DNA of 64,000 nt from Tubulanus polymorphus (lineage: Eukaryota > Animalia > Nemertea): contig NC_134030.1 of the NCBI RefSeq assembly GCF_964204645.1, forward strand, positions 7,979,122 to 8,043,121, written 5' to 3'. A program made the translations under genes and the position numbers. The notes below the pieces were generated by a model, which made no database searches, was not told the origin of the DNA, and saw only the letters and a list, made by a program, of their open reading frames with translations. Shown piece after piece: positions 43,203 to 54,441 of the stretch. Position 1 is the first letter of the stretch, and each line of letters begins with the position of its first letter.

Positions 43203-44493
43203 ATGAATGGATTGATCGTTTTTGTGAGTAGCTTATGTCCGATCATACTTTCAAACCGTGTTTTCGCAGCATCATCGCTAGGAAATGATGCAATTTTTAT
43301 AATCTTAATTGTTGCAATTTCATATCGAAGGGCTTTATCTTCGTTGCCGCTTTGGCTGGTGCATTGGCAGAATGCGAAGATGTGAGTATTAGGTTGGTCA
43401 CCATCCCCGTCGTGTGGCCGGTGTCAATTGATTATAGACAGAGAACGACGGGTTTAACCATGGACTCTAAATCGAGTCCATGGAGTTCGAACGCGTTTAC
43501 TGGTCCATGTTGTAGTCCGAGACCACAATTATTTATGCTCGAACTTTTATGTAAATGGGGCGTAACGCATGACTCTGTGTATTTGTAAATTGTGTTTCTT
43601 CGATTAACTCACCTATCGTTTGATTTTCAACATGGCCGCTCTCAAGAATCGGTGTGAACCGGATGGATCTTGCGACAAAGAAACATGTGAGGTTCCTACG
43701 GGTAAAAAGCTTTCCAAATTCTGTTCAGAAATTCTTTTCGGCGAGTCGGCGAGGTTTTATAGTAACTTCGAATGAAATAATTTCGATTCAGAAAGTGGCC
43801 TTCGAACATGTCTGGAGATTGGTGATAAACCCGATGATAATGATTGCTCCGACGAATGCCAAACAGACGGTAAAACATTGATTTGATCTGTTATTTTGTT
43901 TCATTCTTTAAAGTCTCCATTCAGGCAGGGGTGGATCCATGAATGTTGTTAGAGGGGTTCCATGCTTATTCAAATGGCCGCAAATTGTTTAGAATTTGCC
44001 TCTCTGAGACGCAATCTGATGTATATTGATGGGGATATAAGCTGAAGTACGTACGGTGGATTGCTAGGCTTATACAATAAATACATTTCCCGATTCTTTC
44101 TTGAGGCATTTAGGGGAGTTCACCGGCAATAAGTTAACCCCTGGATTCGCCCCTGTACAGTGGTTATGGACCCATAGTTTTAATAAAAAGAGTTATATTC
44201 AATGTATTGCTGAACTTGTGGACCCTGTGGTTTATCTCCCCGCAGTCGATTGCCCGGCTGATGACGAATGCTGCAAAAGCCCGTGCGGGAACAGGTGCGA
44301 AAAAGCTCTGAGGATACCGACTACCATGGAAACCGGACGCTGTCCACCGATCAGGGGTGGCGCGTGCACGTACGATCACGGAGAATGTATCGAAGACAAC
44401 GACTGCCCGGGTACCGAGAAATGTTGCCCGATCAATTGCGGTACGACTAAGAACTGCGCTGAAGGGGTCGTCATTGAAATTCTTAACGATTAA
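43203..44493 (+). CDS. Secreted acidic double-WAP (four-disulfide core) domain protein, perlwapin/WFDC/waprin-like
   Basis: Exons 43203-43223, 43331-43381, 43647-43701, 43792-43869, 44246-44493. Product: MNGLIVFGFIFVAALAGALA (signal peptide), a 4-Cys segment, and two 8-Cys WAP motifs (ECQTDVDCPADDECCKSPCGNRC; ECIEDNDCPGTEKCCPINCGTTKNC). TATAA at 43151, AATAAA at 44498. Confidence 0.8.
43928..44155. mobile_element. MITE family B in the last intron of the WAP gene
   Basis: caggggtggatcca ... tggattcgcccctg. Confidence 0.65.
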
Positions 44494-51883: not shown

Positions 51884-53106
51884 ATGAGGGTTCTTTACAC
51901 TAACAACTTCGTGGTAGCTGTGCTAGTCAGTCTGTACGCAGTTTATTGCAGTAAGTAATGCGGGCACACCTCACACAATCTCGTCAGAATCTAACAAATA
52001 TCATTTGCTATTTCTAGAGAAAATGCACTTTACCGTTGAACCGCACGTAGTTGAAATCAAATGATGAACCCTAAATATCAAAAACCGTCAATTACTAATT
52101 GTTCACTAATTGTTCACTTGTTTTCTTTGGATGGATTTGGGTGCAAGTTCGATATTACGTGCGCTGGTCCAAGCTGCGCCCATATAACGAGATGTTCTAT
52201 AGTGGAATGAAGATGTTCAATAACATTCAGATAGAATCTCATTATTCATTGTAAGATAGAAATCTCATTGCATCATTTCCAAATTTTGTACTATCCAAAC
52301 GATACGTCATATCATTCATTGGAACGCATTCTAACAGTCGTTTCTTGACATGCTATTTTTTCTGAATTTTGTAAAAACCTGAATTAGTGGCATTCTCCCT
52401 TGGTGGAACGTATTTTACCTTCCGTCGTTTATATATGTCGCAGCGGTTTCCCTGCGTTTTTAAACTTCGTATATGTGTTGTTTAGGGGCAGCAACGACAG
52501 CCAAACCGACGATAGATCCGACGCTATGCCAACCTATGTGCATCAATGACGGCGAGTGTATAGTTAAACCGTTACCGACTACCACGTCATTTCCGCTCAA
52601 TGAAACGACCGATATTTCGTCAACAGAAACTACGGCGCCGGACACCCCACCAACAACGGCGAATACGGCGGATCCAACGACGCCGGACACCCCGCCAACA
52701 ACAGATCTTACGAATACATCGACGGAATACGTTTGCAAATGTGTCACCGGTACTAGCGGTAACATTTGTCAACATGGTAATGAAATTTCTAATGCGATAA
52801 AATCCCTTTTTTTAAAAAGTCGTTTATTCGGCAAAATAAACGTTTAAAAAAATCATCAGATATGAAAATGCGTGATTTACTCAATTAATCTTAACATCTT
52901 TTCAATACTCTTTCTTCGTTATTCTTACAGGATTTCCGAAGACGAAATGGTTGTGGGCACTGGCATTCTCGATACCAATCGCTGTAGTTCTTGTCGCGAT
53001 GGTCATCGCTGTTATGTGTTATCATCGTAGGAAAGAAGATGATACCAAACTCGCGCTCGCCGCTAATGAGGCCATTAATATCGAAGATGAACTAACTGCT
53101 ATGTAG
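51884..53106 (+). CDS. Small type-I membrane protein with a single EGF-like module interrupted by a Thr/Pro-rich mucin-like loop
   Basis: Exons 51884-51950 (signal peptide MRVLYTNNFVVAVLVSLYAVYC, gtaagt donor), 52486-52776 (C-x3-C-x5-C-x58-C-x-C-x8-C), 52931-53106 (TM WLWALAFSIPIAVVLVAMVIAVMCY; tail ends ELTAM*); AATAAA at 53175. Confidence 0.8.
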
Positions 53107-54441
53107 TAGATATATCTGATTGTGTATTAGTGAGTATTGTTAGTGAACTGATACTAGAAAAATCGTGTATTTTCAATAAATGAACGTTAAGTATTGATAT
53201 AGTTTAATCTAGGACGTTTTTGTTTTTAGTTCATTTACTTAATGCGGTTATGTAATGATCTGTATATCAATTCGTATGATCCATGTGTAAAAGAAGACAT
53301 CAATTGACTTTTATTACCGGAAAACTGTTGTTTAATGATATTTCATTCTATTGAGGCTAAGAGCGAAGACTGTTAATGACATTTTAGTTATTTCCATCAC
53401 ACTGGCGATCACTCTTTCGAGTTGTAGACTGTTAATGAGTTCGTGCAGAAAGTCTACTCTGTTTACGTATATATTTCAATTTTAGTAACGTCCATTACTC
53501 ATCGTTTTACACGACGAAGACAAAGGACACGACACTTGAAGTATTTCCAAGTCACGATCTTCACGTTCATGCTGACCACTGCAACCACTTCCTGATAATT
53601 ATACATACATTCGCGCTTGAAAGCATTTATGAATATCTTGTTACCGACGATATTGAGAAAACATAACATATACCTGAACATCGCTTAACTTCATTCAGAT
53701 AAACCACAAAAAACACGTTCTCTTTCAGTAATAAAGATAATTTATTAATCGCTTTTAATTTTCGAACGTCAATCAACAGATCGATATGTTTAGTTCGCAG
53801 CTTACTAAAATGGATGCATTAAAACGCTTCACTTTCCATACGGTAAAAAATAAACGGCCTTTTTCTCACGAAGGCATATCCAGTATGCATATGAACTAAT
53901 TTTAGAATTGTTGAACAATTAAGTAGTAAAATGATAGGCCTATAGGTAATCTTTGAGGGTGACGTAACATTCTTGAATACGTTTTCGATGTGTTTCTTCG
54001 ATATCATGTCGAATCGGCTTATACAAGTGAATTGCGTCGAAACAAATTTCAATTCACTTCGGGGGACCAATAATATTGAGGTTTCTGCGCTGCTGGATTA
54101 ACTCAGACATTTCCATATCTACGTGTTCATATAGGTACGTTATTTATTGGACATTGGGCTTTCGGGGGGATAAGTTGAACATTTTTTTTATACTCAGAAA
54201 AACTTTATCAAATCTACAGATAATCCGTGGTTTTATAGAGAATAGAACTGTTTGCGCGCGATTGCAGCTGGATGCAGCGAGGAAAAAACGTTGTTTGTGT
54301 TCCTAATTACAAAAACTGAATTACGGCCAATGAGTTTCCGGAACCAATGAATCGAACCGTGATATCCAATTATTCGAAGACCGGATGTTATTGGCTGGTC
54401 GGCTGATGGACATTATCGATGACGTAGACGTCTCGGAATTC

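Follow-up and report, generated by a model that had tools for sequence, protein, structure and literature searches.

The palaeonemertean ribbon worm Tubulanus polymorphus (Nemertea) possesses a three-exon gene, LOC141907451, on the forward strand at positions 51884-53106 of the window, by which we mean the whole 64-kb stretch of DNA that was analysed (G000:C6:7979122-8043121). Its second exon encodes the two halves of an EGF-like cysteine pattern, separated by a long Thr/Pro-rich segment. Such an arrangement poses two questions. First, do the six cysteines belong to a single EGF-like module of a genuine protein, with a mucin-like segment lodged in one of its loops? Second, is that protein a ligand of the EGFR/ErbB class, or a membrane glycoprotein of another kind?

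Joining the three exons by script gave a frame of 534 nt, the 177-aa product of which is identical to RefSeq XP_074653200.1 (P0001); the gene structure in the original prediction, made from the DNA letters, is thus also the annotated one. In RefSeq the product bears the name "uncharacterized protein LOC141907451", and it was the sole match of a word search. The features of the gene are collected in Table 1.

Table 1. Features of LOC141907451, in positions of the 64-kb window (a slash marks an exon boundary).
Feature	Position	Strand	Description
Exon 1	51884..51950	+	ATG, hydrophobic signal-type N-terminus MRVLYTNNFVVAVLVSLYAVYC, first base of codon 23; donor a/gtaagt
Exon 2	52486..52776	+	phase 1 at both ends; acceptor tttag/, donor g/gtaatg
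EGF-like motif, N-terminal half	52527..52559	+	Cys37-x3-Cys41-x5-Cys47 (CQPMCINDGEC); Pfam EGF profile positions 4-17
Cys3-Cys4 loop	52560..52733	+	58 residues, acidic, Thr/Pro-rich; sequons N61 (NET) and N99 (NTS)
22-nt direct repeat	52636-52657 and 52681-52702	+	CGCCGGACACCCC[A/G]CCAACAAC; copies 45 nt apart, one mismatch
EGF-like motif, C-terminal half	52734..52769	+	Cys106-x-Cys108-x8-Cys117 (CKCVTGTSGNIC), preceded by Tyr104
Exon 3	52931..53106	+	stalk, membrane helix, tail, TAG stop (53104-53106); acceptor ttacag/
Membrane helix	52948-53022	+	25 residues; best 19-residue Kyte-Doolittle window mean 2.8
AATAAA polyadenylation-type signal	53175..53180	+	69 nt past the stop codon

Exon 2 comprises 96 full codons (52488-52775), which specify a short Thr-rich N-terminal stretch and then the entire split EGF-like motif. 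The stalk, made up of the eight residues between Cys117 and the start of the membrane helix at W126, starts with QH at the end of exon 2, and Gly120 straddles the exon 2/3 junction. The tail is 27 residues long and acidic (HRRKEDD...ELTAM), with T-A-M at its C-terminus. Exons 1 and 3 agree with the earlier statement that the gene adds a signal peptide, a membrane helix and a short tail to the split module. The -3/-1 rule makes it more likely that Cys22 is still part of the predicted signal peptide.

Two further open frames of the window may be mentioned. The one at 44101-44493 (+) codes for a four-disulfide-core domain of WAP type (Pfam PF00095, E 6.4e-9, 36.4 bits); it probably belongs, as an exon, to a neighbouring WAP-domain gene some 7.4 kb upstream. 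The other, at 52460-52765 (-), is a 101-aa antisense frame opposite exon 2; it is rich in Val, Gly and Ser, as the ACN/CCN-rich codons of the loop lead one to expect on the opposite strand, and is without the signs of a gene.

The cysteines of the ectodomain are residues 37, 41, 47, 106, 108 and 117, and the recomputed spacings of 3, 5, 58, 1 and 8 match those first proposed in every position. Several residues around them belong to the EGF consensus, namely Tyr104 two positions before Cys4, Gly111 and Gly114 in G-x-x-G-x-x-C, and the N-D-G-x-C of the N-terminal half. The site of Cys6 reads G-N-I-C in the translated exon, as had been noted, instead of the G-x-R-C of EGFR ligands. The Pfam EGF profile (PF00008) covers both halves as two stretches, with 20.8 bits (E 4.7e-4) for exon 2 alone and 15.6 bits for the whole of XP_074653200.1, which places the protein below the curated cut-off of 21.5 bits; a shortfall of this kind is expected from a split motif. 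In the six-frame translation of the 64-kb window, the six-Cys pattern and the half-motif CxCxxGxxGxxC each occur once, at exon 2. Since Pfam EGF matches both halves and this occurrence is the only one in the window, the motif goes beyond chance.

A sequence search of the PDB gave heregulin-alpha, NRG1, an EGF/TGF-alpha chimera and EGF as the best EGF-type rows, with E-values of 0.6-5, which are not significant. In the heregulin alignment, residues 39-50 of the query fall on residues 12-24 of the chain and residues 95-122 on residues 24-50. The two halves thus abut at one and the same heregulin residue, which puts the insert between the two halves of an EGF. Residue 24 is the tip of the main hairpin, and it is at this tip that the insert would lie.

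The mucin-like character that had been ascribed to the insert is borne out by its composition, with 20 Thr, 10 Pro, five Asp and four Ser among the 58 residues (T+S+P, 59%). A tandem duplication of 15 codons at 52636..52702 has left the PDTPPTT unit encoded twice; this duplicated unit and the two N-glycosylation sequons had been predicted, and all were found within the loop. By the criteria for mucin-type sequence, the high content of Pro, Thr and Ser and the repeat units are both present, and the length is far below that of classical mucin domains. The loop has no second copy in the 268-Mb genome, at either the DNA or the protein level.

A loop of this kind could be an artefact of the transcript model if a cryptic intron removed it. 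With a minimum length of 40 nt, exon 2 contains seven in-frame GT..AG pairs. The pair 52558-52626 (69 nt) would delete Cys3 and retain most of the loop, the pair 52558-52704 would also delete Cys3, and the remaining five of the seven all end at 52756 and would delete Cys4 and Cys5. No in-frame GT..AG pair in exon 2 excises the loop while retaining the six cysteines, and hence a normal six-Cys EGF cannot be obtained from this exon through a canonical intron.

We propose, tentatively and at somewhat less than even weight, that XP_074653200.1 is a small type I membrane glycoprotein, a mini-mucin built on an EGF-like knot. Its ectodomain of about 100 residues beyond the signal peptide would derive almost wholly from one phase 1-1 exon and would consist of a single EGF-like disulfide knot, placed eight residues above the membrane, in which the acidic, Thr/Pro-rich, mucin-like segment has brought the Cys3-Cys4 hairpin (the B-loop) to a length of 58 residues. 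Part of this growth is owed to the 45-bp tandem duplication. With their cysteines paired Cys1-Cys3, Cys2-Cys4 and Cys5-Cys6, the two halves would form a rigid clamp from which a loop with dense O-glycosylation is displayed on the cell surface, and the short tail, with its basic RRK stretch and a terminal T-A-M that fits the pattern of class I PDZ ligands, would serve to anchor or sort the protein. These disulfides, the glycosylation, a role at the surface and expression itself are all inferred here from the sequence.

The layout also suits a second interpretation, in which XP_074653200.1 is a divergent membrane-anchored EGFR/ErbB ligand of the Spitz, TGF-alpha or neuregulin type, be it latent, decoy or juxtacrine, and the loop modulates, masks or times its binding. 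We consider this interpretation unlikely, though it survives better than the other alternatives. According to Stein & Staros (PMC1618406), ErbB ligands are marked by two features of the EGF module, which has a splice site separating Cys4 from Cys5 and is positioned near the membrane helix. The second mark is present in XP_074653200.1, given the eight-residue spacing, but the first is absent, as all six cysteines are encoded on exon 2.

The hallmark that LOC141907451 is without does exist in Tubulanus. As a control, a neuregulin-like gene of the same genome (G000:C4:3364600-3372400; L023, L030) was found to carry the Cys4/Cys5 splice site: one of its exons ends in ...PTGHYYPCEKQTYCLNGGTCIYIPAIKASFCK/gtaagt (...SFCK/gtaagt) right after Cys4-Lys, at about L030:340, and two downstream exons with good acceptors (L030:2590 and L030:3673) encode different Cys5-Cys6 parts, CPSKYAGMRCQE... 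and CPKEFTGNRCQTKDIFTLLRKMK. The membrane-helix exon of this gene lies near L030:7850, and the helix resembles that of Lineus NRG. We take this split to have the same position and layout as the alternative alpha and beta exons of vertebrate NRG1; to judge from these exons, the NRG1-type design of alternative Cys5-Cys6 splicing may be old.

The residues and loop lengths also speak against a ligand. In the classic EGFR-ligand consensus, CX7CX4-5CX10-13CXCX8GXRC, the first loop has about seven residues, whereas XP_074653200.1 departs from it with a first loop of three residues, a Cys3-Cys4 loop of 58 and G-N-I-C. In structures of EGF bound to EGFR, the Cys3-Cys4 hairpin contacts domain I of the receptor, and a glycosylated insert at that hairpin should therefore hinder binding. 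Barberan et al. (PMC4914847) listed candidate EGFR ligands across animals, among them four candidates, beside one EGFR, from the nemertean Lineus ruber. As judged by eye, all four of these (EGF-1, EGF-2, EGF-3 and NRG) have G-x-R-C, and their Cys3-Cys4 loops are 10-12 residues long. In the protostome EGF-type candidates of that study, also inspected by eye, the signal peptide closes with a Cys, after which comes S-(S)-R..PKPRP; the EGF is preceded by sequence rich in Thr, Ser and Pro, 10-17 residues separate its Cys3 from Cys4, and G-x-R-C stands at Cys6. A stalk of some 17-25 residues then leads to a membrane helix that starts with [TK]A[SN]IA[AS]G; the Cys1-Cys2 loop of the candidates has 5-9 residues, as against three in XP_074653200.1. 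The stalk of XP_074653200.1 is short, its helix starts with WLWALAFSIPIAVV and not with the rhomboid-type [TK]A[SN]IA[AS]G, and its ..AVYC-RAATTAKPT is only loosely similar to the Spitz-type motif at the signal site.

There are leads in favour of a ligand, too. Besides the heregulin, NRG1, EGF and TGF-alpha rows from the PDB, the Atlas feature search placed a molluscan 'gurken-like' cluster at the top (score 0.89), which by the calibration of the tool is a lead only, and the Atlas structure search gave precursors of HB-EGF, betacellulin and neuregulins with TM-scores of 0.3-0.45, again leads only; the PDB E-values, 0.6-5, and the Atlas scores, the latter all below 0.9, are at the level of chance. 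Two echoes can be noticed by eye, both loose: CINDGECIVK resembles CLNDGTCFTVK of Keren, and C-R-AATTAKPT together with the shared TTAPDT unit recalls Lineus ruber EGF-2. Tomoregulins likewise are without the conserved Arg before Cys6 (PMC1618406). In addition, no canonical Spitz-like ligand turned up in the Tubulanus genome when its DNA was matched against patterns of TANIAAG, YIRWRKK and N-x-G-x-C-F-x-V-K, motifs which may differ in Tubulanus; the matches of these Spitz-type patterns were chance ones or members of an unrelated repeat family.

Two repeats were noticed in the course of these searches. An identical 21-mer, TACAGAAGATGGCGAAAAAAG, is present on many contigs, at more than 20 places in the genome (e.g. 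C1:2283470, C2:828195 and C6:8104298; L008, L010, L012, L014-L016), with one copy some 61 kb past the window's end; it probably belongs to a dispersed repeat or mobile element. A unit of 13 codons, which reads NPHNCGTCFRVKL in one frame, forms tandem arrays on several contigs (G000:C6:19750455, C8:2234669-2234734, C9:616156 and C10:2724933; L033, L036-L039); these are a repeat family, not an EGF ligand.

Taken together, the absence of the Cys4/Cys5 splice site, of G-x-R-C, of a seven-residue first loop and of a rhomboid-type helix start sets XP_074653200.1 apart from the ErbB-ligand class, and with these sequence features it is unlikely to be a canonical EGFR agonist. What stands of the TGF-alpha/Spitz-like precursor that had been suggested is the overall layout, along with the weak PDB and Atlas leads; the membership of the ErbB-ligand class is not supported.

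A third possibility, somewhat less probable again than a divergent ligand, is that the six cysteines do not form one EGF fold, but separate small hairpins or intermolecular pairs that flank an ordinary mucin linker. Two single-sequence runs of AlphaFold2 drew two separate hairpins, though with low confidence (mean pLDDT 56-57); in the one of the two that took the ectodomain only, the half-motifs reached a pLDDT of 64-73. For these low-confidence models, no structural match to solved chains was obtained (Foldseek PDB search, VIA wide search), and the Pfam EGF score below the cut-off points in the same direction. However, each half has three cysteines, which cannot all pair internally, so that there must be at least one cross-link between the halves or one free Cys. 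The N-D-G-x-C, the Tyr two before Cys4 and the G-x-x-G-x-x-C also fit a single EGF. Furthermore, the Atlas model superposes, with residues 35-121, on single EGF domains over 38-48 aligned residues, with a TM-score of 0.61 as normalised by the 52-aa EGF target. The Atlas model thereby lends weak support to an assembly of the two half-motifs into one EGF, as the mini-mucin proposal would have it.

A search for relatives left XP_074653200.1 on its own. No paralogue of this single-copy gene was found in the 268-Mb Tubulanus genome, and when 1.84 billion representative proteins were searched in full with HMMER, no true relative came up, the matches being the protein itself and P0002. The latter (148 aa, E 2.2e-4) was rejected. 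It stems from a 2.9-kb metagenome contig of an AT-rich eukaryote (ENA ERZ27271826:k141_204811; L005:624-1070) and consists of two ordinary EGF exons translated through their intron: each exon ends in ...TATG/GTATGC, and the short intron is translated with TGA as Trp. The part of P0002 that resembles XP_074653200.1 past Cys6, in the juxtamembrane region, is intron sequence; P0002 is therefore not a relative, but a gene-calling artefact in the protein collection.

That the annotation is a computational model laid over a chance or decaying open frame, which is not made as a protein, would be in line with the lack of any relative or paralogue and with the fact that open frames of similar length are not rare in the window, but it is doubtful, more so than either alternative above, in view of three exons with good splice sites and matching phases, a signal peptide, EGF-like motif, helix, basic stop-transfer stretch and AATAAA in the correct order, an intact frame and a motif that is single in the window. 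As far as its sequence can tell, LOC141907451 is a real, single-copy, lineage-restricted gene, seen in one species.

A regulatory role may be imagined for the EGF knot as well, as a latent or glycan-masked signalling module, or for the protein as a membrane-bound decoy or modulator of the worm's EGFR. In the former case, the loop would block the contact with the receptor until a protease or glycosidase removed or trimmed it, and cleavage would leave a two-chain EGF joined by the Cys2-Cys4 disulfide. We regard this as very improbable, the least probable of the readings discussed here; if true, it would be an undescribed way to regulate an EGF-type ligand.

The preferred reading, a mini-mucin on an EGF-like knot, has consequences of its own. 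Provided that the protein is produced and adopts a single EGF fold, a knot of six cysteines can take up a long insert, disordered and glycosylated, at its hairpin tip. This would be a natural case of loop display on a very small scaffold, of some relevance to protein engineering, and a new layout for a minimal membrane mucin. The weight of the case is modest at present, resting as it does on a single gene in one species.

Among known systems, the precursors of ErbB ligands (Spitz, Keren, TGF-alpha, the neuregulins and the Lineus ruber candidates) share with XP_074653200.1 a signal peptide, Thr/Ser/Pro-rich sequence, one EGF near a single membrane helix and a short tail, and locally also CxNxGxC[FI]xVK and YxCxC. 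They differ in that the mucin-like stretch lies ahead of the EGF, the Cys3-Cys4 loop has 10-17 residues, G-x-R-C precedes the end of the module, the stalk is longer, a site for a rhomboid or a sheddase is present, and the genes are spliced between Cys4 and Cys5, except in Drosophila, where this splice site has been lost. Tomoregulins (TMEFF1/2) resemble XP_074653200.1 in having an EGF near the membrane helix, and differ from it in their follistatin domains, normal loop lengths and Cys4/Cys5 splice site. In the membrane mucins MUC3, MUC4, MUC12 and MUC17, mucin-type sequence occurs together with an EGF module close to the membrane helix, and MUC4 is a membrane-bound partner of ErbB2 that modulates it (PMC1618406). 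All four are very large, with long tandem-repeat mucin domains located outside EGF modules that have the Cys4/Cys5 splice site, whereas XP_074653200.1 has 177 residues and its mucin-like part is inside the EGF module.

Argos of Drosophila, the historical model of an inhibitory EGF-like protein, has been described as bearing an EGF-like motif of atypical form (PMC2717834) and acts by sequestration of Spitz (PMC1618406). Different from XP_074653200.1, it is secreted, with a length of 444 aa. The atypical motif of Argos has an extended Cys3-Cys4 loop, and its solved structure turned out not to be an EGF fold, which calls for caution against over-reading a pattern of cysteines.

The closest precedent for the site of the insertion is the L4 domain (domain IV) of laminin and perlecan. 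In laminin L4, an LE (EGF-like) module carries an insert of about 180 residues between Cys3 and Cys4 (PMC3544776), from which it follows that a large insert at this loop can be tolerated by an EGF-like module. The laminin insert is folded, conserved and globular, in contrast to the 58-residue, low-complexity, mucin-like insert of XP_074653200.1; the LE module has eight cysteines and belongs to a secreted matrix protein, whereas the six cysteines of XP_074653200.1 are located beside a membrane helix, and neither Laminin_B nor Laminin_EGF of Pfam matches exon 2 or the whole protein. The architecture had at first been put down as unrecognised, but the insertion site has its precedent in laminin L4 (PMC3544776). 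Our literature searches found no description of a mucin-like insert within an EGF domain. The insertion site is thus known already, and what is new here is the predicted presence of a short, disordered, mucin-like insert in a single six-Cys juxtamembrane module.
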